Position numbers and translations under genes: made by a program. The notes beneath the pieces are model-generated. The model had not been told where the DNA came from. It searched no databases and worked only from the letters and a program-made list of their open reading frames with translations. Positions 1 to 37,942 of a stretch of DNA of 64,000 bases are shown here, one piece after another. The stretch lies in NCBI GenBank assembly GCA_964234715.1, contig OZ174280.1. One strand, given 5' to 3'. Within the stretch, counting starts at the first letter, position 1. Each line of letters starts with the position of its first letter. This stretch comes from Podarcis melisellensis. Taxonomy: Eukaryota.

Positions 1-142
1 TTTACTTAGATCTGCAAGACCTAAGTCAGAACAACTGCACTTTAGGCAGACGTGCATTAACTACAAGGGCTACAAAATTGTACAGAGTCATGTGCACATC
101 TATGGACCAGGGACAGTGATTGTACAAGTGAATGAAAATAAC

Positions 143-325
143 CTTTGCATTTTGGAAGTTTAGTCCAGTTCACAGAGTTTGAGCCTTCTAAAATACAGGT
201 AACCAGATACTCTCCTTCGAGGGAATAACCGCCATCACAAATGTATATTACAGAACTCCCATAGGTGAGGTCTTCTCCTATATTCTTTCCATGCGCAATG
301 CTTGGTGGTGGTGGACAACGCATTA
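143..325 (-). CDS. CCP37 (type E)
   Basis: cag acceptor, gttatt donor, 183 nt. Confidence 0.85.
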
Positions 326-436
326 CTGCAAAAAGAAAAGAAAACCAGAAGTTGATATAATGATGCTAACTGAGAATTCCCAAGTATCACTTGCTCTGTG
401 TTTTTAGCCAGCAAGGATAGGCAGGGAAATACCAAC

Positions 437-619
437 CTTCACACTGGGGTAAAGGTTGACTCCAAGCTCCAGAGGCTGTACACTGAATGGAAGCCTTGCC
501 ACGTAACAGGTAGCCACGGTCACAGGTGTAATTGACGTATCTTCCTGTAGCAAAATGAGCTTCTCCATGGCCATTGTGATCACCATTTGGAATAGGCAGA
601 GGAGGGGGACACTGCAATT
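437..619 (-). CDS. CCP36 (type D)
   Basis: tag acceptor, gttggt donor, 183 nt. Confidence 0.85.
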
Positions 620-971
620 CTAAAGCAAAACTATATGAGCACCAAGCCTATCTCAAAGCAAATAGAAACCGTCCCAATTCTTGATCCGAGGATTACAACT
701 CCTTCACTATAGTAGATTCTAGTTTTTGTAGCTAGCATAAGCTACCTTCACCCCCACTAATCATGGTTTGAGATCACAGGAGTACCAGCCCTCTTCTCCT
801 ACTATTATGGACTATTGTTCCAACCCATGTCTGCCATGTAGATCCAGGTTCAGAACGAGTATTTCTGGTCCAGAGGTTCTTTGTAAGGGCACCATTGTGT
901 GCTACGCTCTGGGTAGCATGTTATGTCCCTGCTGGAAAAAAGCCACTAGGGCCTATGATCAAGACACACAC

Positions 972-1154
972 CTTCACAGTGAGGGGCAGGAGCACTCCAT
1001 GTTCCAGAGGTTGTGCAATAAATAGTTCCCTCTCCAGTAAGTGAGTAGCCAGGCTCACAGCTGTATTTCACAAACATTCCATTGGTGAACACTGATGATC
1101 CCTCATTGCTGTGAATCCCATTTTGGATACTTAGGGGTGGCTGGCATTGAATTT
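972..1154 (-). CDS. CCP35 (type C, Leu variant)
   Basis: cag acceptor, gtgtgt donor, 183 nt. Confidence 0.85.
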
Positions 1155-1324
1155 CTGAAAGGAAAAGAGTGTACTTACAATGTCAAGACCATTCAAAGTT
1201 ATTCTTCCATCATCTTTGTGTACTTCTTGTTTTCTACATGTATACAGTTTGAATCTCTTCTCCATCGGCTTGTACAGAATACTGTGCCACCCTATGTCTC
1301 GTGTATTGCAATCCAGAAACCTAC

Positions 1325-1507
1325 TTTTGCAGTGAGGAGCAGGAGCAGACCATTTGCCAGATGGGGTGCAATAAATTGTTGCCTCTCCATGTAGAGAGTA
1401 GCCAGGCTCACATGTGTAATTCACAGACATTCCACTGGTAAACACTGACAATTCCTGGTGGCTGTGATTCCCATTTTGGATTTTTGTGGGTTGCTGGCAC
1501 TGAATCT
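1325..1507 (-). CDS. CCP34 (type B)
   Basis: cag acceptor, gtaggt donor, 183 nt. Confidence 0.85.
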
Positions 1508-2002
1508 CTGACAGAGGAATAGAAGTGGAATCTAGCAGAAAATAAATAAGAAAGATTCTTCAACTCAAGGAACCATAATAGTTTCCTGTATGCAGATAGT
1601 ATCTCAAATGACCTAATTCAGTACACTTGTTTTCTCATTTCCAGTACAAATAGATGTGGGGGCAAGTAATTGTGACAATATTGGGAGGAGGTGTTTGAGC
1701 ATGGATAGAGAGAAACTGTGGCACCCTCTCCCCACAAATGTTTGCTTAATATCTTTAAGGTATAGCTTTTGCCACATGCTGAAAATGCAATTCTTTCCCC
1801 TTTGACATTTAAAAATATTGTATTTTATGGGTCCCATAACACTTTTTTACTGAATTAGAGCTGTTCTGCTCCGTATCAAATGGTTTTACTTGTTTTATCA
1901 TTTTAAGTGTTTTATCTCTTTTTATAATCATTTTATTATTTTATTATATTTTGATAGTAGCACTGTTATTCATCTGGAAAAGCTAAATTTATTGCCACCT
2001 AC

Positions 2003-2188
2003 GTTGTCTGCTTTTACAATGCGGAACAGATTGATCCCATGTTCCAGAAGTCAGACAGTGTATTGTCGCAGCTCCAGTAAGAAAGTAGTCAGGGTCACAA
2101 CGATACGTCACAGAGGAGCCATAAGGAAAATCTTCCAGACTTTCAGTGTCACGTTCCCCATTGGCAATCGCTTGAGGTGCAGGGCAAC
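2003..2188 (-). CDS. CCP33 (type A)
   Basis: Copy at the 2228-bp period. Confidence 0.8.
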
Positions 2189-2370
2189 CTGTGGAGAAAT
2201 GTTTCAATGCAGAACTATCATCAGAGCTTTTACTTAGATCTGCAAGACCTAAGTCAGAACAACTGCACTTTAGGCAGACGTGCATTAACTACATGGGCTA
2301 CAAAATTGTACAGAGTCATGTGCACATCTATGGACCAGGGACAGTGATTGTACAAGTGAATGAAAATAAC

Positions 2371-2553
2371 CTTTGCATTTTGGAAGTTTAGTCCAGTTCA
2401 CAGAGTTTGAGCCTTCTAAAATACAGGTAACCAGATACTCTCCTTCGAGGGAATAACCGCCATCACAAATGTATATTACAGAACTCCCATAGGTGAGGTC
2501 TTCTCCTATATTCTTTCCATGCGCAATGCTTGGTGGTGGTGGACAACGCATTA
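2371..2553 (-). CDS. CCP32 (type E)
   Basis: Copy at the 2228-bp period. Confidence 0.85.
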
Positions 2554-2664
2554 CTGCAAAAAGAAAAGAAAACCAGAAGTTGATATAATGATGCTAACTG
2601 AGAATTCCCAAGTATCACTTGCTCTGTGTTTTTAGCCAGCAAGGATAGGCAGGGAAATACCAAC

Positions 2665-2847
2665 CTTCACACTGGGGTAAAGGTTGACTCCAAGCTCCAG
2701 AGGCTGTACACTGAATGGAAGCCTTGCCACGTAACAGGTAGCCACGGTCACAGGTGTAATTGACGTATCTTCCTGTAGCAAAATGAGCTTCTCCATGGCC
2801 ATTGTGATCACCATTTGGAATAGGCAGAGGAGGGGGACACTGCAATT
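2665..2847 (-). CDS. CCP31 (type D)
   Basis: Copy at the 2228-bp period. Confidence 0.85.
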
Positions 2848-3199
2848 CTAAAGCAAAACTATATGAGCACCAAGCCTATCTCAAAGCAAATAGAAACCGT
2901 CCCAATTCTTGATCCGAGGATTACAACTCCTTCACTATAGTAGATTCTAGTTTTTGTAGCTAGCATAAGCTACCTTCACCCCCACTAATCATGGTTTGAG
3001 ATCACAGGAGTACCAGCCCTCTTCTCCTACTATTATGGACTATTGTTCCAACCCATGTCTGCCATGTAGATCCAGGTTCAGAACGAGTATTTCTGGTCCA
3101 GAGGTTCTTTGTAAGGGCACCATTGTGTGCTACGCTCTGGGTAGCATGTTATGTCCCTGCTGGAAAAAAGCCACTAGGGCCTATGATCAAGACACACAC

Positions 3200-3382
3200 C
3201 TTCACAGTGAGGGGCAGGAGCACTCCATGTTCCAGAGGTTGTGCAATAAATAGTTCCCTCTCCAGTAAGTGAGTAGCCAGGCTCACAGCTGTATTTCACA
3301 AACATTCCATTGGTGAACACTGATGATCCCTCATTGCTGTGAATCCCATTTTGGATACTTGGGGGTGGCTGGCATTGAATTT
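3200..3382 (-). CDS. CCP30 (type C, Pro variant)
   Basis: Repeat copy; IQCQPPPSIQNG. Confidence 0.85.
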
Positions 3383-3552
3383 CTGAAAGGAAAAGAGTGT
3401 ACTTACAATGTCAAGACCATTCAAAGTTATTCTTCCATCATCTTTGTGTACTTCTTGTTTTCTACATGTATACAGTTTGAATCTCTTCTCCATCGGCTTG
3501 TACAGAATACTGTGCCACCCTATGTCTCGTGTATTGCAATCCAGAAACCTAC

Positions 3553-3735
3553 TTTTGCAGTGAGGAGCAGGAGCAGACCATTTGCCAGATGGGGTGCAAT
3601 AAATTGTTGCCTCTCCATGTAGAGAGTAGCCAGGCTCACATGTGTAATTCACAGACATTCCACTGGTAAACACTGACAATTCCTGGTGGCTGTGATTCCC
3701 ATTTTGGATTTTTGTGGGTTGCTGGCACTGAATCT
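3553..3735 (-). CDS. CCP29 (type B)
   Basis: Copy at the 2228-bp period. Confidence 0.85.
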
Positions 3736-4230
3736 CTGACAGAGGAATAGAAGTGGAATCTAGCAGAAAATAAATAAGAAAGATTCTTCAACTCAAGGAA
3801 CCATAATAGTTTCCTGTATGCAGATAGTATCTCAAATGACCTAATTCAGTACACTTGTTTTCTCATTTCCAGTACAAATAGATGTGGGGGCAAGTAATTG
3901 TGACAATATTGGGAGGAGGTGTTTGAGCATGGATAGAGAGAAACTGTGGCACCCTCTCCCCACAAATGTTTGCTTAATATCTTTAAGGTATAGCTTTTGC
4001 CACATGCTGAAAATGCAATTCTTTCCCCTTTGACATTTAAAAATATTGTATTTTATGGGTCCCATAACACTTTTTTACTGAATTAGAGCTGTTCTGCTCC
4101 GTATCAAATGGTTTTACTTGTTTTATCATTTTAAGTGTTTTATCTCTTTTTATAATCATTTTATTATTTTATTATATTTTGATAGTAGCACTGTTATTCA
4201 TCTGGAAAAGCTAAATTTATTGCCACCTAC

Positions 4231-4416
4231 GTTGTCTGCTTTTACAATGCGGAACAGATTGATCCCATGTTCCAGAAGTCAGACAGTGTATTGTCGCAGC
4301 TCCAGTAAGAAAGTAGTCAGGGTCACAACGATACGTCACAGAGGAGCCATAAGGAAAATCTTCCAGACTTTCAGTGTCACGTTCCCCATTGGCAATCGCT
4401 TGAGGTGCAGGGCAAC
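4231..4416 (-). CDS. CCP28 (type A)
   Basis: Copy at the 2228-bp period. Confidence 0.8.
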
Positions 4417-4598
4417 CTGTGGAGAAATGTTTCAATGCAGAACTATCATCAGAGCTTTTACTTAGATCTGCAAGACCTAAGTCAGAACAACTGCACTTTA
4501 GGCAGACGTGCATTAACTACATGGGCTACAAAATTGTACAGAGTCATGTGCACATCTATGGACCAGGGACAGTGATTGTACAAGTGAATGAAAATAAC

Positions 4599-4781
4599 CT
4601 TTGCATTTTGGAAGTTTAGTCCAGTTCACAGAGTTTGAGCCTTCTAAAATACAGGTAACCAGATACTCTCCTTCGAGGGAATAACCGCCATCACAAATGT
4701 ATATTACAGAACTCCCATAGGTGAGGTCTTCTCCTATATTCTTTCCATGCGCAATGCTTGGTGGTGGTGGACAACGCATTA
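4599..4781 (-). CDS. CCP27 (type E)
   Basis: Copy at the 2228-bp period. Confidence 0.85.
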
Positions 4782-4892
4782 CTGCAAAAAGAAAAGAAAA
4801 CCAGAAGTTGATATAATGATGCTAACTGAGAATTCCCAAGTATCACTTGCTCTGTGTTTTTAGCCAGCAAGGATAGGCAGGGAAATACCAAC

Positions 4893-5075
4893 CTTCACAC
4901 TGGGGTAAAGGTTGACTCCAAGCTCCAGAGGCTGTACACTGAATGGAAGCCTTGCCACGTAACAGGTAGCCACGGTCACAGGTGTAATTGACGTATCTTC
5001 CTGTAGCAAAATGAGCTTCTCCATGGCCATTGTGATCACCATTTGGAATAGGCAGAGGAGGGGGACACTGCAATT
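4893..5075 (-). CDS. CCP26 (type D)
   Basis: Copy at the 2228-bp period. Confidence 0.85.
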
Positions 5076-5427
5076 CTAAAGCAAAACTATATGAGCACCA
5101 AGCCTATCTCAAAGCAAATAGAAACCGTCCCAATTCTTGATCCGAGGATTACAACTCCTTCACTATAGTAGATTCTAGTTTTTGTAGCTAGCATAAGCTA
5201 CCTTCACCCCCACTAATCATGGTTTGAGATCACAGGAGTACCAGCCCTCTTCTCCTACTATTATGGACTATTGTTCCAACCCATGTCTGCCATGTAGATC
5301 CAGGTTCAGAACGAGTATTTCTGGTCCAGAGGTTCTTTGTAAGGGCACCATTGTGTGCTACGCTCTGGGTAGCATGTTATGTCCCTGCTGGAAAAAAGCC
5401 ACTAGGGCCTATGATCAAGACACACAC

Positions 5428-5610
5428 CTTCACAGTGAGGGGCAGGAGCACTCCATGTTCCAGAGGTTGTGCAATAAATAGTTCCCTCTCCAGTAAGTGA
5501 GTAGCCAGGCTCACAGCTGTATTTCACAAACATTCCATTGGTGAACACTGATGATCCCTCATTGCTGTGAATCCCATTTTGGATACTTGGGGGTGGCTGG
5601 CATTGAATTT
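5428..5610 (-). CDS. CCP25 (type C, Pro variant)
   Basis: Repeat copy; IQCQPPPSIQNG. Confidence 0.85.
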
Positions 5611-5780
5611 CTGAAAGGAAAAGAGTGTACTTACAATGTCAAGACCATTCAAAGTTATTCTTCCATCATCTTTGTGTACTTCTTGTTTTCTACATGTATA
5701 CAGTTTGAATCTCTTCTCCATCGGCTTGTACAGAATACTGTGCCACCCTATGTCTCGTGTATTGCAATCCAGAAACCTAC

Positions 5781-5963
5781 TTTTGCAGTGAGGAGCAGGA
5801 GCAGACCATTTGCCAGATGGGGTGCAATAAATTGTTGCCTCTCCATGTAGAGAGTAGCCAGGCTCACATGTGTAATTCACAGACATTCCACTGGTAAACA
5901 CTGACAATTCCTGGTGGCTGTGATTCCCATTTTGGATTTTTGTGGGTTGCTGGCACTGAATCT
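5781..5963 (-). CDS. CCP24 (type B)
   Basis: Copy at the 2228-bp period. Confidence 0.85.
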
Positions 5964-6458
5964 CTGACAGAGGAATAGAAGTGGAATCTAGCAGAAAATA
6001 AATAAGAAAGATTCTTCAACTCAAGGAACCATAATAGTTTCCTGTATGCAGATAGTATCTCAAATGACCTAATTCAGTACACTTGTTTTCTCATTTCCAG
6101 TACAAATAGATGTGGGGGCAAGTAATTGTGACAATATTGGGAGGAGGTGTTTGAGCATGGATAGAGAGAAACTGTGGCACCCTCTCCCCACAAATGTTTG
6201 CTTAATATCTTTAAGGTATAGCTTTTGCCACATGCTGAAAATGCAATTCTTTCCCCTTTGACATTTAAAAATATTGTATTTTATGGGTCCCATAACACTT
6301 TTTTACTGAATTAGAGCTGTTCTGCTCCGTATCAAATGGTTTTACTTGTTTTATCATTTTAAGTGTTTTATCTCTTTTTATAATCATTTTATTATTTTAT
6401 TATATTTTGATAGTAGCACTGTTATTCATCTGGAAAAGCTAAATTTATTGCCACCTAC

Positions 6459-6644
6459 GTTGTCTGCTTTTACAATGCGGAACAGATTGATCCCATGTTC
6501 CAGAAGTCAGACAGTGTATTGTCGCAGCTCCAGTAAGAAAGTAGTCAGGGTCACAACGATACGTCACAGAGGAGCCATAAGGAAAATCTTCCAGACTTTC
6601 AGTGTCACGTTCCCCATTGGCAATCGCTTGAGGTGCAGGGCAAC
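6459..6644 (-). CDS. CCP23 (type A)
   Basis: Copy at the 2228-bp period. Confidence 0.8.
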
Positions 6645-6826
6645 CTGTGGAGAAATGTTTCAATGCAGAACTATCATCAGAGCTTTTACTTAGATCTGCA
6701 AGACCTAAGTCAGAACAACTGCACTTTAGGCAGACGTGCATTAACTACAAGGGCTACAAAATTGTACAGAGTCATGTGCACATCTATGGACCAGGGACAG
6801 TGATTGTACAAGTGAATGAAAATAAC

Positions 6827-7009
6827 CTTTGCATTTTGGAAGTTTAGTCCAGTTCACAGAGTTTGAGCCTTCTAAAATACAGGTAACCAGATACTCTCCT
6901 TCGAGGGAATAACCGCCATCACAAATGTATATTACAGAACTCCCATAGGTGAGGTCTTCTCCTATATTCTTTCCATGCGCAATGCTTGGTGGTGGTGGAC
7001 AACGCATTA
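6827..7009 (-). CDS. CCP22 (type E)
   Basis: Copy at the 2228-bp period. Confidence 0.85.
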
Positions 7010-7120
7010 CTGCAAAAAGAAAAGAAAACCAGAAGTTGATATAATGATGCTAACTGAGAATTCCCAAGTATCACTTGCTCTGTGTTTTTAGCCAGCAAGG
7101 ATAGGCAGGGAAATACCAAC

Positions 7121-7303
7121 CTTCACACTGGGGTAAAGGTTGACTCCAAGCTCCAGAGGCTGTACACTGAATGGAAGCCTTGCCACGTAACAGGTAGCCA
7201 CGGTCACAGGTGTAATTGACGTATCTTCCTGTAGCAAAATGAGCTTCTCCATGGCCATTGTGATCACCATTTGGAATAGGCAGAGGAGGGGGACACTGCA
7301 ATT
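7121..7303 (-). CDS. CCP21 (type D)
   Basis: Copy at the 2228-bp period. Confidence 0.85.
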
Positions 7304-7655
7304 CTAAAGCAAAACTATATGAGCACCAAGCCTATCTCAAAGCAAATAGAAACCGTCCCAATTCTTGATCCGAGGATTACAACTCCTTCACTATAGTAGA
7401 TTCTAGTTTTTGTAGCTAGCATAAGCTACCTTCACCCCCACTAATCATGGTTTGAGATCACAGGAGTACCAGCCCTCTTCTCCTACTATTATGGACTATT
7501 GTTCCAACCCATGTCTGCCATGTAGATCCAGGTTCAGAACGAGTATTTCTGGTCCAGAGGTTCTTTGTAAGGGCACCATTGTGTGCTACGCTCTGGGTAG
7601 CATGTTATGTCCCTGCTGGAAAAAAGCCACTAGGGCCTATGATCAAGACACACAC

Positions 7656-7838
7656 CTTCACAGTGAGGGGCAGGAGCACTCCATGTTCCAGAGGTTGTGC
7701 AATAAATAGTTCCCTCTCCAGTAAGTGAGTAGCCAGGCTCACAGCTGTATTTCACAAACATTCCATTGGTGAACACTGATGATCCCTCATTGCTGTGAAT
7801 CCCATTTTGGATACTTAGGGGTGGCTGGCATTGAATTT
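7656..7838 (-). CDS. CCP20 (repeat exon type C, Leu variant)
   Basis: 183 nt; IQCQPPLSIQNG...APHCE. Confidence 0.88.
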
Positions 7839-8008
7839 CTGAAAGGAAAAGAGTGTACTTACAATGTCAAGACCATTCAAAGTTATTCTTCCATCATCTT
7901 TGTGTACTTCTTGTTTTCTACATGTATACAGTTTGAATCTCTTCTCCATCGGCTTGTACAGAATACTGTGCCACCCTATGTCTCGTGTATTGCAATCCAG
8001 AAACCTAC

Positions 8009-8191
8009 TTTTGCAGTGAGGAGCAGGAGCAGACCATTTGCCAGATGGGGTGCAATAAATTGTTGCCTCTCCATGTAGAGAGTAGCCAGGCTCACATGTG
8101 TAATTCACAGACATTCCACTGGTAAACACTGACAATTCCTGGTGGCTGTGATTCCCATTTTGGATTTTTGTGGGTTGCTGGCACTGAATCT
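8009..8191 (-). CDS. CCP19 (repeat exon type B)
   Basis: 183 nt; IQCQQPTKIQNG...APHCK. Confidence 0.88.
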
Positions 8192-8686
8192 CTGACAGAG
8201 GAATAGAAGTGGAATCTAGCAGAAAATAAATAAGAAAGATTCTTCAACTCAAGGAACCATAATAGTTTCCTGTATGCAGATAGTATCTCAAATGACCTAA
8301 TTCAGTACACTTGTTTTCTCATTTCCAGTACAAATAGATGTGGGGGCAAGTAATTGTGACAATATTGGGAGGAGGTGTTTGAGCATGGATAGAGAGAAAC
8401 TGTGGCACCCTCTCCCCACAAATGTTTGCTTAATATCTTTAAGGTATAGCTTTTGCCACATGCTGAAAATGCAATTCTTTCCCCTTTGACATTTAAAAAT
8501 ATTGTATTTTATGGGTCCCATAACACTTTTTTACTGAATTAGAGCTGTTCTGCTCCGTATCAAATGGTTTTACTTGTTTTATCATTTTAAGTGTTTTATC
8601 TCTTTTTATAATCATTTTATTATTTTATTATATTTTGATAGTAGCACTGTTATTCATCTGGAAAAGCTAAATTTATTGCCACCTAC

Positions 8687-8872
8687 GTTGTCTGCTTTTA
8701 CAATGCGGAACAGATTGATCCCATGTTCCAGAAGTCAGACAGTGTATTGTCGCAGCTCCAGTAAGAAAGTAGTCAGGGTCACAACGATACGTCACAGAGG
8801 AGCCATAAGGAAAATCTTCCAGACTTTCAGTGTCACGTTCCCCATTGGCAATCGCTTGAGGTGCAGGGCAAC
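8687..8872 (-). CDS. CCP18 (repeat exon type A)
   Basis: 186 nt; GCPAPQAIANG...PHCKSRQ; donor C|gtaggt. Confidence 0.82.
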
Positions 8873-9054
8873 CTGTGGAGAAATGTTTCAATGCAGAACT
8901 ATCATCAGAGCTTTTACTTAGATCTGCAAGACCTAAGTCAGAACAACTGCACTTTAGGCAGACGTGCATTAACTACAAGGGCTACAAAATTGTACAGAGT
9001 CATGTGCACATCTATGGACCAGGGACAGTGATTGTACAAGTGAATGAAAATAAC

Positions 9055-9237
9055 CTTTGCATTTTGGAAGTTTAGTCCAGTTCACAGAGTTTGAGCCTTC
9101 TAAAATACAGGTAACCAGATACTCTCCTTCGAGGGAATAACCGCCATCACAAATGTATATTACAGAACTCCCATAGGTGAGGTCTTCTCCTATATTCTTT
9201 CCATGCGCAATGCTTGGTGGTGGTGGACAACGCATTA
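9055..9237 (-). CDS. CCP17 (repeat exon type E)
   Basis: 183 nt; VMRCPPPPSIAHG...LPKCK. Confidence 0.88.
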
Positions 9238-9348
9238 CTGCAAAAAGAAAAGAAAACCAGAAGTTGATATAATGATGCTAACTGAGAATTCCCAAGTATC
9301 ACTTGCTCTGTGTTTTTAGCCAGCAAGGATAGGCAGGGAAATACCAAC

Positions 9349-9531
9349 CTTCACACTGGGGTAAAGGTTGACTCCAAGCTCCAGAGGCTGTACACTGAAT
9401 GGAAGCCTTGCCACGTAACAGGTAGCCACGGTCACAGGTGTAATTGACGTATCTTCCTGTAGCAAAATGAGCTTCTCCATGGCCATTGTGATCACCATTT
9501 GGAATAGGCAGAGGAGGGGGACACTGCAATT
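9349..9531 (-). CDS. CCP16 (repeat exon type D)
   Basis: 183 nt; LQCPPPLPIPNG...LPQCE. Confidence 0.88.
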
Positions 9532-10091
9532 CTAAAGCAAAACTATATGAGCACCAAGCCTATCTCAAAGCAAATAGAAACCGTCCCAATTCTTGATCCG
9601 AGGATTACAACTCCTTCACTATAGTAGATTCTAGTTTTTGTAGCTAGCATAAGCTACCTTTACCCCCACTAATCATGGTTTGAGATCACAGGAGTACCAG
9701 CCCTCTTCTCCTACTATTATGGACTATTGTTCCAACCCATGTCTGCCATGTAGATCCAGGTTCAGAATGAGTATTTCTGGTCCAGAGGTTCTTTATAAGG
9801 GCACCATTGTGTGCTACGCTCTGGGTAGCATGTTACGTCACCACTTCCCAATCTGGCTTTGACTTTCCTAACAGACAGCTCACACTCTCCGTTATCCTAT
9901 GCAAAACAAAACTCTGTGTGATAAAGTTCCAAAATATGTGCTTCCAGTTTGAGGCAGCATTACTATAAGAATGTGTCTGAATCAATGGTTTTCAATGTAG
10001 AAAGGAAGAATCATGAGTGAACACCAGTTCTAAATTTTGTAGCCTTCACTCCTAGAACTATCCCAATAAAACTTATGACCAAGAATCTTAC

Positions 10092-10274
10092 TTTTGCAGT
10101 GAGGAGCAGAGGAAGACCATGTACCAGATGCTGTACAGTGAACAGTTGCATTTCCAGTAAGAAAGTAGCCAGGCTCACATGTGTAATTCACAGACATTCC
10201 ACTGGTAAACACTGATAATTCATGGTGGCTGTGATTCCCATTTTCAATCTTTGCAGGTGGCTGGCACAGAGTTT
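10092..10274 (-). CDS. CCP15 exon (ETLCQPPAKIENG...APHCK)
   Basis: 183 nt; gtaaga donor. Confidence 0.9.
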
Positions 10275-11182
10275 CTGACAAGAGAGCAAAAGCGGTAGAT
10301 AGAAAAAAGTAAAAATAAATAAATAAAACATTTACCACAAGGAATCATAATTGCTTCCTATGTGCAGATAGGAATGAGCTAAGCTGGTACTCTAGATTCT
10401 TCCAAGTCCCATGATACAGAAGCTCTTCCTGTCAGCCATTAAAGGTCCACAGAGATCCAGGTTCAGAGAGAGTATTCCTGGTTCAGAGGTGCTGACATTG
10501 TTTTAAAAGGGCACCATTGTGTGAACTCGGGTGAACTATTGCCTTTAAGGCAGCATGTACTGTGCCCTGTGAAAAAGGCCACCAGTGCCAGCGAACAGGA
10601 ATATGGGGATTAAAACACGGAAAGTTGGTTCCGAACTTGTGGGTCAGGTAAAGCCTGGGCAAAGACAAGACATCTGAAGCAACTAGTGGTTGTTCCCACA
10701 TCTAGGCACCACAGTCTCTGTCCAACCAAGGTTGAGTGCATCTTCCTTCCTTTACTAGTGATATTGCCTATCATTATTGGTTGGATTTCTATTTCAAAAT
10801 TCAGTTCAATCAATTAAAAACAGAACTTGCTGAGTTTTCCCCTCTTGTGTTTAGGGGAAGGGAGCTGTACTGTAGAACATTTGTTTCATGAAGAAGATCC
10901 CTGGCTTCTCCAGGTAAGGCTGGAAATGCCCCCCCCCCGAAACACAGTTGTGTGACTCCATATAAGGCAGCTTCCCATATTCCTAATTTGGGAGGGAAGT
11001 AAGTGGGTGGTGTTTTTTTTGTGTGTGCGGGAGTGTGTCAAGTTAGATAAGTTTGTTAGATACGTTTGTATGTTTTGTGGCTCGTATCTGGAAACTCCCA
11101 AGGAGGACTTCAACAGATTTAACTAACTTTTTTGCTTATCACGGAAAAATGAAATCCAGTCAAAGCTGTGCTTAGTACCTAC

Positions 11183-11362
11183 CCCTTACACAGATGGGTG
11201 TGGGAGAATCCCATGTGCTGTCAAACTGGCACTGAATTGTATGGTTGCCTTTCAGGATATAGCCAGGGTCACATTCAAATGTAATTGTCTCTGTGGGCTT
11301 AACTTGCCCTTTAGATCTTGTTATTCTTCCATTCTGAATTTTTGGACTTACACAGCCAGTGA
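11183..11362 (-). CDS. CCP14 exon, paralog of CCP5 (TGCVSPKIQNG...PICVR)
   Basis: 180 nt; absent from the ORF track, translated by hand. Confidence 0.88.
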
Positions 11363-11821: not shown

Positions 11822-12004
11822 ATTCACAGCGTGGGACAGGGAGACTCCACACACCGGATGCTGTGCAATATATAGTTGCCCTTCCTATTAGCACATAACC
11901 AGGGTCACAGCTGTATTTTACAATTTTTCCACTAGTATATTGTTCTGATCCCAGAGCCCTGTACTTTCCATGCTGGACTTTGGGAGGTGAGGGGCAATGT
12001 ATCT
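11822..12004 (-). CDS. CCP13 exon (EIHCPSPPKVQHG...VPRCE), GC donor
   Basis: 183 nt; donor T|gcaagt. Confidence 0.8.
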
Positions 12005-13282: not shown

Positions 13283-13462
13283 CTTTGCAGTTAGGCGCTG
13301 AGGAGTTCCAAGACCCAGATGCTGTACAAAAAATTCTGGCATCTCCTACAATGCTGTATCCAGGATCGCAAGTGTATTCTACAAACCCCCCATTAGTAAA
13401 ACCTTTTGCTTCCTGACTGCTGTATTTTCCATGAGCGACCACTTGAGGTGGGGGGCACTGCA
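13283..13462 (-). CDS. CCP12 exon (QCPPPQVVAHG...APNCK)
   Basis: 180 nt; gtgagt donor. Confidence 0.88.
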
Positions 13463-14297: not shown

Positions 14298-14480
14298 TTT
14301 CACAATGTGGCAGAGGACTGCTCCACTCTCCAGAAGCTGTGCAGGAAATAGATGCCTTTCCAACAAGCGAGTAACCAGGATCACAGGAATAAGTTACAGA
14401 CTTCTGAGAAGTAAACACTTCCCCAGGAAAACCATTGTGATTTCCATTGGGTATATCCAGAGGCAAGGGGCACTGTGATA
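14298..14480 (-). CDS. CCP11 exon (VSQCPLPLDIPNG...LPHCE)
   Basis: 183 nt, sushi consensus. Confidence 0.88.
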
Positions 14481-15497: not shown

Positions 15498-15680
15498 CCA
15501 GTTCACAGTGAGGTAGAGCAGGGTCCCATGTACCATCTACTTGGCAATGAATCTCTCTTGTTCCAGATATTTTGTAGCCAGCACTGCAGTCTAAAGTCAC
15601 CCTTTGGTTATACATGTAGGTGTCTGAATAACCAGTTACTATCCTTCCATTCCTTACTTGAGGGGGTGGACACTGAGTCA
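15498..15680 (-). CDS. CCP10 exon, paralog of CCP4, GC donor
   Basis: 183 nt; VTQCPPPQVRNG...PHCEL; donor G|gcaagt. Confidence 0.85.
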
Positions 15681-20958: not shown

Positions 20959-20982
20959 TATGTTAACATATGTTCTACTTAC

Positions 20983-21926: not shown

Positions 21927-22026
21927 CCTTCCTCGCAGGTGTAATTTATAGTAGAACCAAATAAAAGATCTTTTGTTACAATCAGCCTCCCATTATCTGG
22001 TTCTCCTGGATATCCACATGATTTTC
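21927..22026 (-). CDS. CCP8a half-exon ([13 protein letters not shown]...YTCEEG)
   Basis: 100 nt, phase 1-2. Confidence 0.9.
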
Positions 22027-22840: not shown

Positions 22841-23177
22841 GGTAAAGGTAAAGGTAAAGGTACCCCTGCCCGTACGGGCCAGTCTTGACAGACTCTGGGG
22901 TTGTGCGCCCATCTCACTTAAGAGGCCAGGGGCCAGCGCTGTCCGGAGACACTTCCGGGTCACGTGGCCAGTGTGACATCGCTGCTCTGGCGAGCCAGAG
23001 CCGCACACGGAAATGCCGTTTACCTTCCCGCTGGTAAGCGGTCCCTATTTATCTACTTGCACCTGGAGGTGCTTTCGAACTGCTAGGTTGGCAGGCGCTG
23101 GGACCGAGCAGCGGGAGCGCACCCCGCAGCAGGGATTCGAACCGCCAACCTTTCGATCGGCAAGTCCTAGGCGCTGA
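22841..23177 (-). mobile_element. Sauria SINE, 5'-truncated
   Basis: ggtaaa tail repeats; near-identical to the 48471 copy. Confidence 0.88.
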
Positions 23178-23606
23178 CATAAAATAGGATAATTGCATCA
23201 AGCAGGAAATAATATGCACAAGACAAAAATGAGAGAAGCAATTTCATCAGTGGGAACAAGATGTGATGTGCAGTTCCTTACTCAAGCAGATTAAAGAACA
23301 TTCAAGCTGTTTTATTTCTTCTGTTTCTTGGAAGGTGGTAGCGCCTTCACTATTATAAGAAGGGCCTTCCTTCAACAGTTGCCAGTTTGACTTTGGGCAG
23401 CAGCCAGCAAAGTAATTGCATTCTGCTTGTGCAATGAAACTTCCCACCCCTCTCTTTTCCCTGTGCCTTCTCCAAATCTGCTATGGAAGGGATGAGGGAA
23501 CCCTAGAACAGGTTTAGGGTATGCACAGGGGGAGGGGGAGAAGGGGCAGTTCTACCGCACAACCAAAAGTCCTTGCACTAATAGAACTACAGTATCTTGC
23601 AGTATT

Positions 23607-23913
23607 AAACCACAGAGCCTAGGGCTTGCCAATCAGAAGGTCGGCGGTTTGAATCCCCGTTGCTCGGTCCCTGCTCTTGCCCACCTAGCAGATCGAAAGC
23701 ACGTCAAAGTGCAAGTAGATAAATAGGTACCGCTCTGGGGGGAAGGTAAACGGCGTTTCCGTGGGCTGCTCTGGTTCACCAGAAGTGGCTTATTCATGCT
23801 GGCCACATGACATGTACGCCGGCTCCCTCGGCCAATAAAGCGAGATGAGTGCCGCAACCCCAGAGTCGGTCACAACTGGACCTAATGGTCAGGGGTCCCT
23901 TTACCTTTACCTT
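23607..23913 (+). mobile_element. Sauria SINE
   Basis: Conserved body, acctttacctt tail. Confidence 0.85.
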
Positions 23914-24150: not shown

Positions 24151-24330
24151 CTTCACAGCGAGGGGCAGGGGAAGACCATGTACCAGATGCTGTGCAGTAA
24201 ATAGTCTCCTCTCCAATTAGACCATAGCCAGGCTCACATGTGTATTTCACAGACATTCCATTAGTAAACACTGTTGCTTCCTGGTTGTACATCCCATTTT
24301 GAACATGTGGGGGTGGCTGGCATTGAATCA
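24151..24330 (-). CDS. CCP6 exon (VIQCQPPPHVQNG...APRCE)
   Basis: 180 nt, lies in ORF 24029..24397. Confidence 0.9.
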
Positions 24331-25309
24331 CTGAAAGGGAAAAAAGGTGGTTACAATGGAAAAACACATTACAAACATCCTTGACTGTAAATTCCACATT
24401 TGTAAGAAGTCAATCATTTAGTGTGGCAGCACCTATACTTGGGAACTCCCTGCCTATTGATATCAAGCAGGTGCCTTCACTTTATTCTTTTTGGCATTTG
24501 CTAAAAGCATTCTTGTTTTTGGCAAGCCTACCCTGATGCTTAGAAAGTTGAAATAATTTTAATCTGTTTTACTATTTTAACTTTTGTTTTTTCTTAAAGT
24601 TGTAAAATTTCCTCGGTTTTATTTTGGTAAACTACTTTGAAATTATTGCTTTTTACAATCAAGCAGTGTATAAATTTTATGAAGCAAACAAATAATAAAT
24701 ACTGTTAATAAGTGTGTGTCAATCTGAACTTTATCTTTGGGTCATGGCATGAGTACAGGTTGACCAAACTTAACATGAAAGGAGCCCCCCCCCTTAACTT
24801 TTATTGGCTCTGGTATCATTATTATAGTTATGCTTTTTACAAAGCATATGCTAATTCAAACGAAACATGATACATATCTATTGCATTTGCAATGGTCTGT
24901 CATTAATTGTTATGATTCCTGTTTCAGGTTTCAGTCCAATCAATAAACCCCCAAAGGCTTATTTCCTCAATCACACTCTATTGCAGGTGTAGCCAACTTG
25001 GTGCACTTCAGTTGTTGTGGACTATAACTCCCATAATCTTTTACTATTGGCCATGCTGACTGGGGCTGATGAGAACTGTAGTCCAGCAACACATGAAGGG
25101 CACCATTTTGGCTATCTTTATTCAGTGGAATGATTTAAGTACTTACACACCCCTGTATGGTATTGATTTGTAGAGAGTCTTTAATGAGCACAAGCTCAGA
25201 TGAGACTTTCATTCTTTTTGGTTCATATCTGAAACTGTCAAAGGAGATCCAAACAAAAGGAAAGTATTTCTGACTATTAGAAGCAAATGAAAGATATACT
25301 AATACCTAC

Positions 25310-25489
25310 CCCTAACACAAATGGGCACAAGAGAATCCCATGTGCTGTCAAATTGGCACTGAATTGTATGTTTGCCTTTCAGGATATAGCCAGGGTCACA
25401 TTCAATTGTAATTGTCTCTTTGGGTTTAACTTGCCCTCTAGATCCTGTTATTCTTCCATTCTGGATTTCTGGATTTTCACAACCAGTGA
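25310..25489 (-). CDS. CCP5 exon (VTGCENPEIQNG...PICVR)
   Basis: 180 nt; cag acceptor, gtaggt donor. Confidence 0.85.
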
Positions 25490-25539
25490 CTGCGAAGGAA
25501 AAAGGATAAAGCCATTATTAAATTCTATAATATGTGAGA

Positions 25540-25979
25540 TGATGGTTTTCCCAGTAGTGATGTATGGAAATGAGAGCTGGACCATAAAGAAGGCTGATCG
25601 TCAAAGAATTGATGCTTTTGAATTATGGTGCTGGAGGAGACTCTTGAGAGTCCCATGGACTGCAAGAAGATCAAACCTATCAATTCTTAATGAAATCAGC
25701 CCTGAGTGCTCACTGGAAGGACAGATCGTGAAGCTGAGGCTCCAATACTTTGGCCACCTCATGAGAAGAGAAGACTCCCTGGAAAAGACCCTGATGTTGG
25801 GAAAGATTGAGGGCACAAGGAGAAGGGGACGACAGAGGACGAGATGGTTGGACAGTGTTCTCGAAGCTACAAACATGAGTCTGATCAAACTGCGGGAGGC
25901 AGTGGAAGACAGAAGTGCCTGGCGTGCTCTAGTCCATGGGGTCACGAAGAGTCAGACACGACTAAATGTGTCTAACAAC
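25540..25979 (+). mobile_element. BovB (RTE) LINE 3' fragment
   Basis: Peptide MVFPVVMYG.ESWTIKKA...IDAFELWCWRRLLRVPWTARRSN, (aac)n tail, 11-bp TSD aatatgtgaga. Confidence 0.92.
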
Positions 25980-26109
25980 AATATGTGAGACCTGAGAGAA
26001 GGGTGTATTGCAGAATATATAAAACCTTGATGTAAAATTCAACATTTTAACTTTCTAGGATCATAGACAACCTTTTAACACTTTCCTGATAATTAGGAAG
26101 TGTATTGGT

Positions 26110-27191: not shown

Positions 27192-27374
27192 CCTGTTCAC
27201 AGTGAGGTAGTGGAGGGTCCCATGTGCCATCCACTTGGCAATGGATCTCTCTCGAGCCAGCTATTTTGTGGCCAGCATTGCAGTCTAATGTCACCCTTTG
27301 GTTATATGTGTAGGTGGCGGAATAACCAGTTACTATTCTTCCATTTTCAATTTGAGGAGCTGGACAGTGAGCCA
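27192..27374 (-). CDS. CCP4 exon (VAHCPAPQIENG...PHCEQ), GC donor
   Basis: 183 nt; donor G|gcaagt. Confidence 0.85.
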
Positions 27375-27650: not shown

Positions 27651-27842
27651 CTCCACAATATGCACGGCCACTCCAAATTCCATTTAATCCATCCTTAGTA
27701 GTACAGTAAATAGTGGCATTTCCCACAAGGGGGTGGCCTTTTTCACAGGTGTATGTTACAGCTGTCCCATAGGAGAAGTCATTCAAGAACCTGCCACTGT
27801 GCTTGCCATGGGGAACATCTGGTGGTGGAAAGCATGGAATAC
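27651..27842 (-). CDS. CCP3 exon (IPCFPPPDVPHG...WSGRAYCG)
   Basis: 192 nt, sushi consensus, lies in ORF 27499..27867. Confidence 0.9.
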
Positions 27843-29118
27843 CTAGAAACATAAGCAGAAGATACATGCCAAAGACAAATATTTTAGTGGGTTTTTAAAA
27901 ATATTTATTGTGTCTTAGTTCATTTTGCATCTAAACATCTCCCTACCTAAGGATACACTAGTGCTTTCATTTAATTTGAGGAAATGCAGTGCTGTTCAGT
28001 TATTATCTTTGTAAGTTAGAAATCTGAAAGTTTTTTAATGCCCTACAGCAATTGTATTTTTGAACACTTATTTTTGTATTTGTGAATTGTTATATTGAAT
28101 TTCTTTTGTAAGAATGTCCGATGGTTTTGTAAGTGTAAGAATAATAATAAAAATGTGAACCATGCGTTTTGATTGATAATATTGTGAAAATTAAGTCTGC
28201 TAGTGCCTACTAGCCACAAAGACAAGAAATAACAAGAAGAGACAATAAGACAGAGGGTGGCACATTGGGAATTATTTTCTGGATACTAGATACTAAGCAG
28301 GAATAGAAGGCTTGTGTGACACTGCAGAAATAGTACATCAGACCTGACAGTTACATCTGGCAATCATTAATTTCATCTTTTGTTTGAAAATTATATTAAT
28401 TTCATGTACGTAAGGCAGCCTACTTCTTCCTGTCACATCTTTGCAAAGTTCTTTCATTCACAGTATTTTAACCTTTCCCCTATAATGAAAATCTAAAAAG
28501 TACATTTACAGAAATTTATCTGTATTATATTTGCATAACTGTACTCGTGTCAGTCTAATTTACTTCATGGGACCTCTTCTATAGAAGTTAGTGGTAGTGA
28601 ATCAGGACCCATTTTTTTAGTTAATTATTATATAACAAAGAAACATTTATCTGGACAGCATCCATGTGACAAGAGATGGGCAAAATTGCAGGTAAGTAAC
28701 AATTGTTACAGGCACAGGAGCAAATTCAGGGCTGAGGACCCTTTGCCCACCCCCATAAAATATTTGAGGGGGCTGCTCGTCCCCCAAAGTTGATGAGAAT
28801 TGCCATTCAAATGGTGTGTGTGGGCCGCACCATGTGAACAATTATGCAAGGTGGGGCTTACTTGTGTCCCCCCCCCATTTTATTCAAGTTGGCAGCCCTG
28901 GTTACAGGTAAGTCCCTTCCTCACATCAGTAGGTTTGCAAAATAACTTGAAGATACAGGAGTCTGCTTCACTTTTTCTTATACTGAATGTGACCAATATT
29001 GAACCATTGTCTATTCCTATGTTTATTTGCTTATTTCAGCAGAGTCTCAGAGGTTATCCCAAAGAGTGAGTTATACCAGGCTTTGTAAAACAAAGCTTCC
29101 ATGCCATAATTTCTTTTA

Positions 29119-29468
29119 GGTAAAGGTAAAGGGACCCCTGACCGTTGTTAGGTCCAGTCGCGGACAACTCTGGGGTTGCGGCACTCATCTCGCTTTATTG
29201 GCTGAGGGAGCTGGTGTAAAGCTTCTAGGTCATGTGGCCAGCATGACTAAGCCACTTCTGGCGAACCAGAGCAGCGCACGGAAACGCCATTTACCTTCCC
29301 ACCAGAGCGGTACCTATTTGTCTACTTGCACTTTGATGTGCTTTCAATATGCTAGGTTGGCAGGAAAAGGGACCGAGCAATGGGAGCTCACCCTGTCACA
29401 GGGATTCGAACCACCGACTTTCCGATCGGCAAGCCCTAGGCTCAGTAGTTTAGACCACAGCGCCACCA
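29119..29468 (-). mobile_element. Sauria SINE
   Basis: ggtaaaggtaaagggacccctg start and conserved body. Confidence 0.85.
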
Positions 29469-29938: not shown

Positions 29939-30027
29939 GTTGACAAAGAGGAATATCATTAGTCCACCCTACTTTCCGGCCAAATACGACACACTTTCTG
30001 CTGGAAGTACTACCAATTAACCTGTGC
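29939..30027 (-). CDS. CCP2b half-exon (HRLIGSTSSRKC...WTNDIPLCQ)
   Basis: 89 nt, phase 2-1, gtaagt donor. Confidence 0.9.
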
Positions 30028-31767: not shown

Positions 31768-31867
31768 CCTTCATTGCAGGTGTAATTTACAGTGGAACCG
31801 AATAAAATATCTTGGGGCACAATCAACTTCCCATTATCTGGTTCCCCTGGATTTCCACAAGATTGTC
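31768..31867 (-). CDS. CCP2a half-exon ([13 protein letters not shown]...YTCNEG)
   Basis: 100 nt, phase 1-2, RCA split-CCP hallmark. Confidence 0.9.
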
Positions 31868-32069: not shown

Positions 32070-32252
32070 GTTTACAGAGCTCCAGAACTTTGGACCACTC
32101 CTGGCTTTGAAGGCACTTAATAGAGTACCTCAGTCCGGTATAGCCTGGACGGCACATATATTTCACAATCGAGCCAACAGGAAATAAATTCTTTTGCTTA
32201 TACTCGTCGGTTAGCTCAGCAAAGTTTAACCTAGGTGGAGGGCCACAGCCAC
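32070..32252 (-). CDS. CCP1 exon (GGCGPPPRLNFAEL...WSKVLELCK)
   Basis: ag/gt boundaries, 183 nt, CCP1-type 'YMCRPGY'. Confidence 0.9.
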
Positions 32253-33431: not shown

Positions 33432-33569
33432 NNNNNNNNNNNNNNNNNNNNNNNNNNNNNNNNNNNNNNNNNNNNNNNNNNNNNNNNNNNNNNNNNNNNN
33501 NNNNNNNNNNNNNNNNNNNNNNNNNNNNNNNNNNNNNNNNNNNNNNNNNNNNNNNNNNNNNNNNNNNNN
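33432..33569. other. Assembly gap (138 N)
   Basis: Run of N. Confidence 1.
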
Positions 33570-34552
33570 AAAATATCATGGTTGCTAAGGGAATGGGGAC
33601 AAATGCTACATTAAGAAAGGCCCCTCAAATGAATTTTCTGCCTCCGGGCTTTTCATAATCACATCAGAAATGGTTACCTTTGTTTCATGCTTCAAAAGTT
33701 TTGGATCCATATGGAGGTTTCAAAGAGCATGTGGCAACAGTTCAGTGGGAGACCAAAATGCCCCATGGACCTAGCATGGGGACTTTCCAAACGATCAAAC
33801 TGATCCACACAATAGATGGTTTCCATAAGTTGCAATTGACAATTAGGGATTATCAAAAACCACACGATTCTGGAAATTTCAACTCCCCTGTGGATGTGCT
33901 GCCAGGCAAATGTAGTTTTTGACAATCACTACATTGGAACTCAGTAAATTCATTTAACCAAATGTTGAAAAGAGTTCTTACTAATCTGTATAGTACCAAA
34001 GATTGTACTAATTATTATTTATATTAATGGACGCATCGCTTGCATCTTCAGCCTTAGTGGCCAATGGCTATCATACTACACACACTTACCTGGGATTAAG
34101 TCTCATTGAATATCGTGGAGCCTGCTTTTGAGTAAAGTAAACTTGCATATGAATCTAAAGTAAGCATTGTGGAAAGTTGGAATGACAGCAAAGAGGCAAA
34201 ATGTTGATCAAAAAGACTGCTAATAGAAAGATCAATAATTATTTCCCCTAATTGTAGATAAAAAAAAAACAGCTACAACAAACTATTCAACAGACTGTTA
34301 TACAAATTTTAAGGTGCATACACAGAACAGGTACACGCTCCACAGAAAACCAATCCTTTGCCCTTCAAAAATTAGGGAAGATTTCCTGAAAAAATAGACA
34401 TTTTATTTGAGTTCACTGAGCAATCTCAAAGCCATCTTTACTCTCTTAATGACCCCAAATATCATTATTTTTTGCTGCAGAAGGAAGCATGTTGGAAACA
34501 CCTTTCCCAATAGATTGCCTGAGTTATTTTCACTTGCAAGTCCTTCAAATCC

Positions 34553-34972
34553 TATAGAGGTTTTCAACCTTTTTGGGTCCACGGCTCCCTTGACCAACTA
34601 CATTCTTTCTGCAGCACCCCTGTGGTGCTCAGGAGCCAAGTTATGTCACCCCTTGCCTGCAGAGCTGGCAGCCCCTTACTGCTTTTTGAACACCCTCCCT
34701 TGTGGAGCGTTCCCTCAGCCTCCTCTCCTCCTCCCAAGAGTCCTCCCGGCAGCCACTGCTGCCACCACTGAGCTGCCCACCCTGCCCCAAAGAGAGGTGC
34801 CTCCTCACACTGCCCCACAGGGGCCTGGGAAGCACCCCCTGCCCAGCCCCAGAGGCACCATTCAGAGGAGGAAGGGAAGGTAAGAGGGACAGAGGCCAGT
34901 GTTGTCCACAGCACCCCTGAACATCATTCAAGGCACCCCAGGGTGCCATGGCACACTGGTTGAAAACCACTG
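34553..34972. mobile_element. hAT-like MITE, diverged
   Basis: ggttttcaacc...ggttgaaaacc inverted ends; TSD unclear. Confidence 0.55.
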
Positions 34973-37129
34973 CTGTAAATAGATAAACATATTTGTATGA
35001 CTGGACCACTGCTCTACAAAACCAGTCTGGCAAGTATCTGTTAAAAACAGAGCAGACCTGTCAAAAGAGCATATACCTACAAATAGGTGAAAATTCCTAT
35101 TGGGGCCAGGAGAGACAAATAGGTATTGTCAGGTACCTTGACCAACAGGAGACAAGTCATACTCTCAAATTTCTATTGTAGACCTTTTTGTGTAAAGCAT
35201 GTATGATGATTTTGGGTGGTCTTTGGCTAAGGGGTTGGGCAATTTCTGTAGTGTCGTTGTTGTTGATGATGATGATAGACTTAAAGGATACTGGGTCTCT
35301 TGATTGGGAGCTGAGCTGCAAAACACCCCATTTTTTTTGGTATAATAACAAGAATTCTCTCCCAGGAAAGATCAGACAGTTCCCTTCCCTGGTCATGTTC
35401 AGGAAGAATTTAAATACATTTTATTGTTCAGGCCTTTGGAAGCTGACAAAAACATTTAGGCATTGTAGATTTTAAAACTGTCTTTAGAAATCTTTTTGTT
35501 ATTGTTGGATATGTTGTTTGTTAGTTGTCCTTGCATCTTTGGGAGGGAGGGAGATAAATAAACTTAACAGATAAATATTGAGACTTTACATCAGACAGCA
35601 TATATATTGTAATTTTATATCAGATAGCACAATAAAGAAATCCACTTATTTCTTAATAATAGTATAATAATGTATAATAATATTTATACATAATCCATTG
35701 ATGAATGAGGAACATCCTAAATAAGATTGCCATATATTAGGTGCATTGTTTTATTAGACAGCTCTCCCGCTCCGCCCACTTTCTAATACAAAAGTTGGTA
35801 ATCAAATGGGACTTTTAAAAATTGTTTATTTACAAGAAGCCACTGAGGAAGTTTAATATTTTGCAGTTTCTTCCTTCAGAAACTTCCTCTTGCTATTTTA
35901 TGTAATGGATTTATAGGAGTATTCAGCTGACTCTCTTCATTCATTCACTGAAGAAGCACAATTGTAAAAAGAAGAATAAAAGAAGCATAATTGTACCAAC
36001 CTGGCCACACCCTAAAATACCAGTGTTACTATAGACTACATGCTGTGGTGGCTGTGTGTTTGGCATTAATGTTAAATGTAAGCACGTACATCTCTTCAAT
36101 GTAACCAGAAACCTTGACTGTCCCAAGTTTCTTGATTGTGCAGAAGAACCCTATGGACAGACACACAGTACCATGCACATACAACCAGAAGGGTCTGACC
36201 ACTGACAGCATTAGATCTGGGATGTGTCAGTAGCAGGCATCATCCCACTCTCCTCATGTACTTGGTGAACATGTGAGGGGGATCATCCAAACATTAGACT
36301 CTCTCACTATTTTTTAAAGCCATAGAATGTCAGCTCTTGCTCTTAAACCTGACTAATCTAACTAGACTAATCTAACTCCCTTTTATATAAACAAAACCCT
36401 TTCCTTCAACCATGAGCCAACTGGTTTTAGCATCCTACTCATATTATTGCAGCTGTTTACATGAAAGTAAACTTTAAATATGTAGTGATTTCATTTCTAA
36501 AAATTGCTTTCACTTGCTGTGTTTCCCTTGTGTGTCCCTCATTTTTGCTTCTAACACTGTGGGCTTGGGTTTGCCTAGAAAGATTTATACCTTGTTCTAA
36601 CCTGAGGTCTTAAGGCACTTAAAATACACTTTTAAAAGGATATAAAGCGGGGGGGGGGGGGGACTCAGTTTCTTTTTCTAGAAAAATAGCACTGATATAT
36701 AGTAATCCATGTCCCCACAATTCTCATAGTTTAAACATACTGTACCATTGCCATCCTCAGACCCCTGGAAAAGTTAGATAAGCCACACTCCTGCCTGATA
36801 TCTGCATAGCCACTACCAGTCAGTGTAAACAATACTGAGCAAGAGGGTCCATTGGTCTGACTATATAGTATAAAGCGTCTTCCTATGCTCCTACAAGCAG
36901 AATTATACCAATCTGGGGTTGAGTTTCCCAGGTTTTACTTTGAGGTCACAATGGACTAGAAAGGCTGGAAGAAGCATAAAGTGAATCAAAAGTTTTCATT
37001 TGAATGAGGCCAAGAGGAGATGCTGGACATGCTAATTAGTAGACCCAAGAAATCTGAGTCTACCTCCCAAACAGACTGAACTTTTGCACTAGGCATAAGC
37101 ATCACATTGCACGACAGAGTCTCAAGATG

Positions 37130-37620
37130 TGCTTTTCCAAGCCCACAGACACAGTATGTTCACACTGCTCTCTCAGCGACATCTATGCTGGCTTAGTCAT
37201 GAACACGGAATGGAAGATGGCAGGAAATCTGAAGGACATGCTCTACAGGGAGCTGACTTCAGGTACCAGGCCTGTTGGCAGACCAGCTCTGCGTTACAAA
37301 TATGACATGAAGGCAGGCAACATCAGCCCCTTGCAGATGACCACAGTGCTGGAGACACAGTCAGGTTGTGCATCCATAGCAGTGACCAGTGGAAGAATGA
37401 CCGCTGGGAGGAGTGCGGAGAGAAGAAATGCCATGGTGTAGCTGCAGCAGCACAACTGGACACCTTCATCTACCCCAGCTGCAATACAACATGTCTCTCC
37501 TGTATCAGCCTCTATAACTACAACAGGCACTGTAGCCTTCCAATGGTTTGACTTCATTCCCAAAGGCACACTCCTCCATTGTCTTCTGAGACAGATGGAT
37601 GCCAACCAACAACAAACAAT
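37130..37620 (+). mobile_element. Old RTE-type LINE 3' fragment
   Basis: LKDMLYRELTSGTRPVGRPALRYK, (caa)n tail. Confidence 0.7.
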
Positions 37621-37869
37621 ATAAAGCAAGGATTAGGAACCACCCTCCCCTCCCCATTAGCTACCCTCTTGAAATCCCCTTTTAACTGCTGATGACCCTT
37701 CCTTAAGGTCCTTTCTCCCAACAGAAGCGGAACAAAAATGTATTGCCAACTCAGGCAGCACCAACTTTTGCCACATTCCCTGGGGAAGGGAGCCTCTCCC
37801 CGCAAAAAAGGATGGGAAAGGAGAAGTACAGAAGCTAGACATAAAGAGTCCCAATTCCCAACTTCTCAC

Positions 37870-37942
37870 CTTGATCTTCCAAAGTAACGGCCAGAAGTTC
37901 CATCAAGCCCCATAATAAGGGAAGCATGCATGCAAGCATCAT
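37870..37942 (-). CDS. Candidate signal-peptide exon MMLACMLPLLWGLMELLAVTLEDQ(G)
   Basis: ATG, hydrophobic core and a phase-1 donor G|gtgaga that matches the phase of the CCP1 exon. Confidence 0.65.

Follow-up and report, generated by a model that had tools for sequence, protein, structure and literature searches.

A tandem array of five-CCP units without regulatory heads in the probable CR1 orthologue of the lizard Podarcis melisellensis

We analysed 64,000 nucleotides of genomic DNA from Podarcis melisellensis (contig OZ174280.1 of assembly GCA_964234715.1), a stretch referred to here as the window. The results make it quite probable that the window covers two thirds, from the 5′ end, of the lacertid CR1 orthologue, an all-CCP type I membrane protein in which two regulatory heads stand on a recently multiplied or homogenised array of complement control protein (CCP, or Sushi) modules. 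From the N-terminus, the protein would be composed of a signal peptide, head 1, two body CCPs, head 2, five body CCPs, and the tandem array. A sequence-only reading of the same DNA had proposed a very long receptor of the complement-activation regulator (RCA) type, a single chain carrying two CCP1-4 heads, and this was borne out by typing of the heads and by the orthologue models. All gene coordinates are positions in the window, on the minus strand unless stated otherwise.

The array consists of a 2,228-bp unit repeated head to tail at window positions 1-9839, in 4.4 copies that are 99.8-99.9% identical by self-BLAST, and it continues past the left edge of the window. Self-BLAST was used since the period of 2,228 bp exceeds the maximum of 500 that Tandem Repeats Finder accepts. 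The copies display no indels and differ at 5-6 substitution sites; four variant sites occur in the boundary copy alone, all within 180 bp of the right boundary, and two further sites, at unit positions 206 and 1367, define four distinct unit haplotypes. All 22 CCP exons in the array are intact, with a single protein-changing substitution among them. Unit 1 occupies 7612-9839, with exons U1 (9531-9349), U2 (9237-9055), U3 (8872-8687), U4 (8215-8009), and U5 (7838-7656). The exons of unit 2 (5384-7611), unit 3 (3156-5383), and unit 4 (928-3155) lie at the same positions minus 2,228, 4,456, and 6,684, respectively, and unit 5 (1-927), which is cut by the window edge, retains U1 (619-437) and U2 (325-143).

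Each of the five unit exons encodes one whole CCP in phase 1-1, so that the unit is in-frame. The exon boundaries were compared with spliced contigs from two runs of related species, guessed to be RNA and 97-98% identical to the window. These contigs contained the joints 9349|9237, 9055|8872, 8687|8215, and 8009|7838, all with GT..AG ends on the minus strand, as well as a joint from 7656 to 9531, found in two species, which corresponds to the splicing of U5 to U1 of the next unit. A circularly collapsed spliced contig measured 972 nt, that is, 942 + 30; the spliced contigs have a loose end of 30 letters, which is absent from the window and corresponds to the start of the last CCP, beyond the window. 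Because the spliced contigs place the start of U4 at 8215 and not at 8191, in agreement with the 314-residue period of the P. muralis protein, the coding capacity of the unit, given previously as 918 nt and 306 aa, was corrected to 942 nt and 314 aa, comprising five body-type CCPs and one 15-residue linker.

The unit had been described as lacking both a split exon and a head module, and our results agree with this. When the exon model and typing against the human long homologous repeats (LHRs) were used to look for a type-i module, the i-iv order, and a split CCP2 in the unit, none was found. The unit modules corresponded instead to LHR positions 5 and 7 of human CR1, with U2 weakly matching position 2. 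The exon S15, which precedes the array, is together with its downstream intron an older paralogue of U4 and the intron that follows the last U4, with 78-80% identity.

The minus strand was the site of all coding potential, which runs from a signal exon through 15 unique CCPs (17 exons) into the array. With a hidden Markov model (HMM) built from the exons, 37 CCPs were located between 32252 and 144, namely 35 whole-CCP exons and two split CCP2 pairs. The number of CCPs, the signal peptide, and the origin of the last 22 modules from the near-identical unit were thus as described earlier, here by HMM and self-BLAST. The exon HMM found nothing else in the chain, and the ectodomain is composed of CCP/Sushi modules alone; all ten of the exons tested passed Pfam Sushi (PF00084), with E values of 3e-8 to 8e-16. 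A local frame check showed a stop-free frame across the signal exon, the 15 CCPs, and one unit. Similarity searches were run exon by exon and never with the joined spliced protein, and ab initio protein models that read through introns were left out of the analysis.

Exon 1 (37870-37942) contains the start codon and a hydrophobic leader of 24 residues (24 codons and one base, GT donor, phase 1); joined to CCP1, it yields the N-terminus of P. muralis XP_028590238 save for two substitutions. Head 1 is made up of CCP1 (type i, 32070-32252; Pfam Sushi, with PDB matches and human LHR position 1), the split exon CCP2a (31768-31867, phase 1 to 2, breaking off after base 2 of a Gly codon), CCP2b (29939-30027, phase 2 to 1), CCP3 (type iii, 27651-27842; Pfam Sushi, PDB and human LHR typing), and CCP4 (type iv, 27192-27374; Pfam Sushi), which has a GC donor that was confirmed along with its junction residue. 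The two body modules that follow, CCP5 (S5, 25310-25489) and CCP6 (S6, 24151-24330), were both identified by Pfam Sushi and by orthologue match. Head 2 comprises CCP1 (22175-22369, 63% identical to CCP1 of head 1, the acceptor at 22369 being taken from the P. muralis junction), CCP2a (21927-22026, split as in head 1) and CCP2b (20983-21068), both found by the exon HMM, CCP3 (17546-17731, 82% identical to CCP3 of head 1), and CCP4 (15498-15680), with a conserved GC donor. Between head 2 and the array lie CCP11 (S11, 14298-14480) and CCP12 (S12, 13283-13462), both matched by orthologues, CCP13 (S13, 11822-12004), an intact exon with a GC donor, CCP14 (S14, 11183-11362), whose joint from 11183 to 10274 was present in a spliced contig, and CCP15 (S15, 10092-10274), whose acceptor at 10274 was likewise found in a spliced contig.

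For the head CCP1, the best PDB matches were CR1 CCP1, DAF CCP2, and Crry CCP1; the head CCP3 matched CCP3 of Crry and MCP and CCP4 of DAF, and the head CCP4 matched CCP4 of Crry and MCP. Compared with the modules of human CR1, the heads corresponded to LHR positions 1, 2, 3/7, and 4. The canonical CCP i-iv regulatory module, with the split CCP2 exon that is typical of RCA genes, is thus present twice. The second head, 63-82% identical to the first, is an old copy of it. The 1.8-kb stretch that separates head 2 from S6 did not resemble the sequence upstream of head 1, and all orthologue models join the heads in a single chain; on these grounds, from genomic comparison and gene models, the possibility that the window contains two genes, one for each head, was rejected.

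An exon model that permitted only GT donors broke the frame at three exons and was discarded, as conserved GC donors (G|GCAAGT) restore the frame at the exons ending at 27192, 15498, and 11822. At all three sites the same hexamer was present in L. agilis as well as in P. lilfordi, and it predicts the junction residues Val, Val, and Phe, which agree with the RefSeq proteins. Annotation of lacertid CR1 must therefore allow for three conserved GC-AG introns. S13 is omitted by every P. muralis and P. lilfordi model and included in L. agilis.

The closest protein models were P. muralis XP_028590237-9, P. lilfordi CAI57777xx, L. agilis XP_033009862, and Zootoca XP_060133465, with 90-100% identity per module. 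They have the same leader, module order, and GC-donor junctions, with both heads on one chain, and past the last U4 they add two further CCPs, a transmembrane helix, and a tail of 34 residues. NCBI names the P. muralis proteins 'complement receptor type 2-like' or 'type 1-like' and the L. agilis protein 'complement receptor type 1'. A further RCA gene is located upstream at 42.4-59.7 kb, and a position beside RCA genes matches CR1. A search with the CCP1 exon of head 2, combined with cluster look-ups, showed that reptiles and birds commonly have CR1 models of 2,000-3,400 aa. On this comparison, the gene is the lacertid orthologue of CR1/CR2-like genes that are already annotated, and not a new receptor. 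The NCBI lacertid models contain 0.8-1.8 units vs. at least 4.4 in P. melisellensis, and they are probably truncated or collapsed at the array.

The array differs in relatives of P. melisellensis. L. agilis has no 2.2-kb array and carries single U5-like, U1, U2, U3, and U4 exons; P. lilfordi has 1.87 units that are 95-96% alike, the second copy having a 184-bp deletion in U1; and in the P. muralis model ~1.8 almost identical units are present. The tandem junction from 9839 to 7612 was present in an independent DNA sample with the same species label and in a related species. Because the P. lilfordi copies are 95-96% alike, L. agilis is arrayless, and the junction occurs in a related species, the first duplication is old and common to Podarcis, and only the homogeneity or the extra copies are young. 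The proposal of a very recent expansion consequently holds for the 99.9% identity of the present copies but not for the duplication itself. In the mechanism that we propose, a state of two copies of the unit would be common to Podarcis, and unequal exchange between near-identical units would have led to multiplication or homogenisation in the P. melisellensis lineage, resulting in at least 4.4 copies at 99.9% identity.

Two observations concern the array in these relatives. The 184-bp deletion in P. lilfordi (44817-44819 of locus L001) takes part of exon U1, an exon that is likewise missing from the gene models of P. lilfordi. In L. agilis (locus L002), a partial U4 that is 93% identical lies at 99325-99453 and a full U4 (87%) ~800 bp further on, at 100276-100479; the pair may be the remnant of an older rearrangement at the array exit.

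Several results weigh against the reading given above. The number of at least 4.4 copies is the count of one assembly, in which the array runs off the window, and every annotated Podarcis model has at most 1.9 units; the P. muralis isoform X3 lacks exactly one whole unit. The collapsed unit contig reached ~1.4-2.2 times the k-mer depth of the flanks in an independent individual that bears the same species label, and ~2.7-3 times in a related species; these ratios would fit 1.8 and 2.8 units, although contig k-mer depth is not a copy number. In addition, the splice evidence comes from related species, and the transmembrane segment lies outside the window.

On these grounds the array could be real but over-expanded, or merged from two haplotypes, in the assembly, the true haploid state being ~2-3 units, similar to P. 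muralis, P. lilfordi, and the independent samples. Besides the depth ratios of ~1.8 in the same-label sample and ~2.8 in a related species and the short annotated models, this explanation can draw on the four unit haplotypes, which could represent two units on each of two haplotypes, and on the start of the window within the array. We nevertheless regard it as rather unlikely, as the units are free of indels and regularly arranged head to tail, the boundary-specific variants occur in the first copy only, and arrays of this kind tend to be collapsed in older assemblies. Moreover, the unit contig of the independent sample differs from all units of the window at ~8 fixed sites, suggesting that this sample may represent another lineage with truly fewer copies.

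Copy number differs between assemblies and species (no array, ~1.8, 1.87, and at least 4.4 units). As regards the copy-number polymorphism that had been expected earlier, contig depth gives a hint of it within the species. Extending the reading of a multiplied or homogenised array, we suggest tentatively, and at less than even odds, that the 5-CCP block is a stalk of variable copy number within and between Podarcis populations, which would turn over by unequal crossing-over and be kept or driven by pathogens or the handling of immune complexes, constituting an independent origin of CR1-like length polymorphism that alters reach and not valency.

The CCP i-iv unit of regulators of the MCP, DAF, and Crry type binds C3b in a common mode (PMC4868954). 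By analogy with these proteins and with CR1, the lizard heads would bind C3b/C4b and function as cofactor or decay accelerator. The array would set the distance of the heads from the membrane, each unit adding ~18-20 nm if one CCP measures ~3.5-4 nm, and its length would be unstable.

It has to be considered that the unit might not be a passive spacer, and that its CCPs might bind other ligands, such as collectins of the C1q/MBL type, pathogens, or, as in CR2, C3 fragments, in which case amplification would multiply the binding sites in the same way as additional LHRs in human CR1. In human CR1, LHR-D lacks C3b/C4b sites and binds C1q and MBL at CCP24-25 (PMC5845983); the likeness of the unit modules to LHR positions 5 and 7, and weakly to position 2, and the intactness of 22 of 22 exons with one protein-changing substitution would accord with such a role. 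We consider it improbable, given that the type-i module and the i-iv order are absent from the unit and that intactness in such young copies is uninformative on selection. Of the designation of the unit as 'spacer only', the lack of head modules is borne out; the spacer function itself is putative, given the binding of C1q and MBL by LHR-D.

Still less probable is that gene copy number is not carried into protein length and that the array is neutral structural variation, with transcripts skipping units or ending early, since the isoform X3 and the models that skip S13 and, in P. lilfordi, U1 are outweighed by the U5-U1 splice between units in two species and by the frequent origin of isoform differences around identical repeats as mapping artefacts.

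The lizard receptor shares with human CR1 an all-CCP ectodomain, a putative type I topology, CCP i-iv heads that recur along a single chain, a CCP2 exon whose split follows base 2 of a Gly codon, and intragenic tandem units that form an in-frame block with near-identical introns. The unit, however, spans 5 CCPs in 2.2 kb vs. 7 CCPs in human CR1, and unlike LHR-B/C it is headless and has no split or fused exons, so that it would add length but no C3b/C4b site. The lizard heads are old copies (63-82% identical), in contrast with the near-identical human LHRs. The F allotype of human CR1 contains 30 CCPs (PMC2189104), and a copy number variant adds sites (PMC3265835). Each lizard head also aligns module by module with CCP i-iv of MCP (CD46), DAF (CD55), and Crry, which carry a single head on a short Ser/Thr/Pro stalk, whereas the stalk of the lizard receptor is made of CCPs.

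Lineage-specific internal repeats in very long proteins are shared with other reptile CR1 models, namely Hemicordylus (XP_053101832), Pogona, Lepidochelys, Eublepharis, and Rhineura. The repeat period is 492 aa in Hemicordylus, 815/435 in Pogona, 554 in Lepidochelys, and 450 in human. Unlike the Podarcis unit, the repeat blocks of Hemicordylus, Pogona, Lepidochelys, and human carry heads; headless repeats also occur in the CR1 models of the gecko Eublepharis and of Rhineura, but these are older or shorter. As to the sequence-only view of a solution different from that of CR1, the amplified unit is headless, but the receptor itself is an annotated CR1/CR2-like orthologue and headless repeats are not confined to Podarcis. 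A literature search found no published work on CR1 arrays in lizards or in Podarcis.

What appears to be new here is the amplified headless block, which does not form an array in L. agilis and is present in 1.9 copies in P. lilfordi, ~1.8 in P. muralis, and, in the assembly analysed, at least 4.4 copies at 99.9% identity in P. melisellensis. By analogy, it would be a lizard parallel to the length polymorphism of human CR1. In humans, disease risk has been associated with CR1 length variation, in which the length of the receptor and its number of binding sites vary jointly. If stalk length alone varies in Podarcis, the receptor would be a natural system in which the effect of length could be separated from that of site number. 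It would also show that the CR1 genes of amniotes have grown repeatedly by in-frame tandem blocks of differing composition, with periods of 314, 450, 492, 554, and 815 residues.

An assembly gap (33432-33569, a run of N) lies inside intron 1, ~1.2 kb upstream of CCP1. Its flanks are collinear with the P. lilfordi locus, where 124 nt separate them, and the leader and CCP1 are joined directly in the P. muralis protein; no exon would be expected within the gap.

The second RCA gene, upstream of CR1, extends over 42462-59724 on the minus strand; its CCP2 is split (59652/58446), and further CCPs lie at 56456 and 53980. NCBI's L. agilis and Zootoca models fuse it to CR1, whereas the P. muralis CR1 model begins at its own signal exon; the fusion is probably a merge error, or else read-through. 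The stretch separating the two RCA genes contains, at 40396-40851, 2-3 tandem copies of a 135-144 bp repeat with 88-89% matches.

Among other repeats, a SINE-like interspersed element of ~330 bp occurs at 22846-23177, 23605-23912, 29116-29467, 48470-48820, and 55614-55962, the copies being 76-97% alike and two of them sitting in the intron that separates S6 from head 2. The intron after CCP4 of head 1 contains, on the plus strand, an open frame of 235 codons (25281-25985) that by eye resembles the tail of a LINE reverse transcriptase. A high-copy repeat is located at 10812-11011 in the S14-S15 intron, with a summed contig depth of 266-334 vs. 8-15 in the flanks. The right end of the window (62001-64000) is GC-rich (57%).

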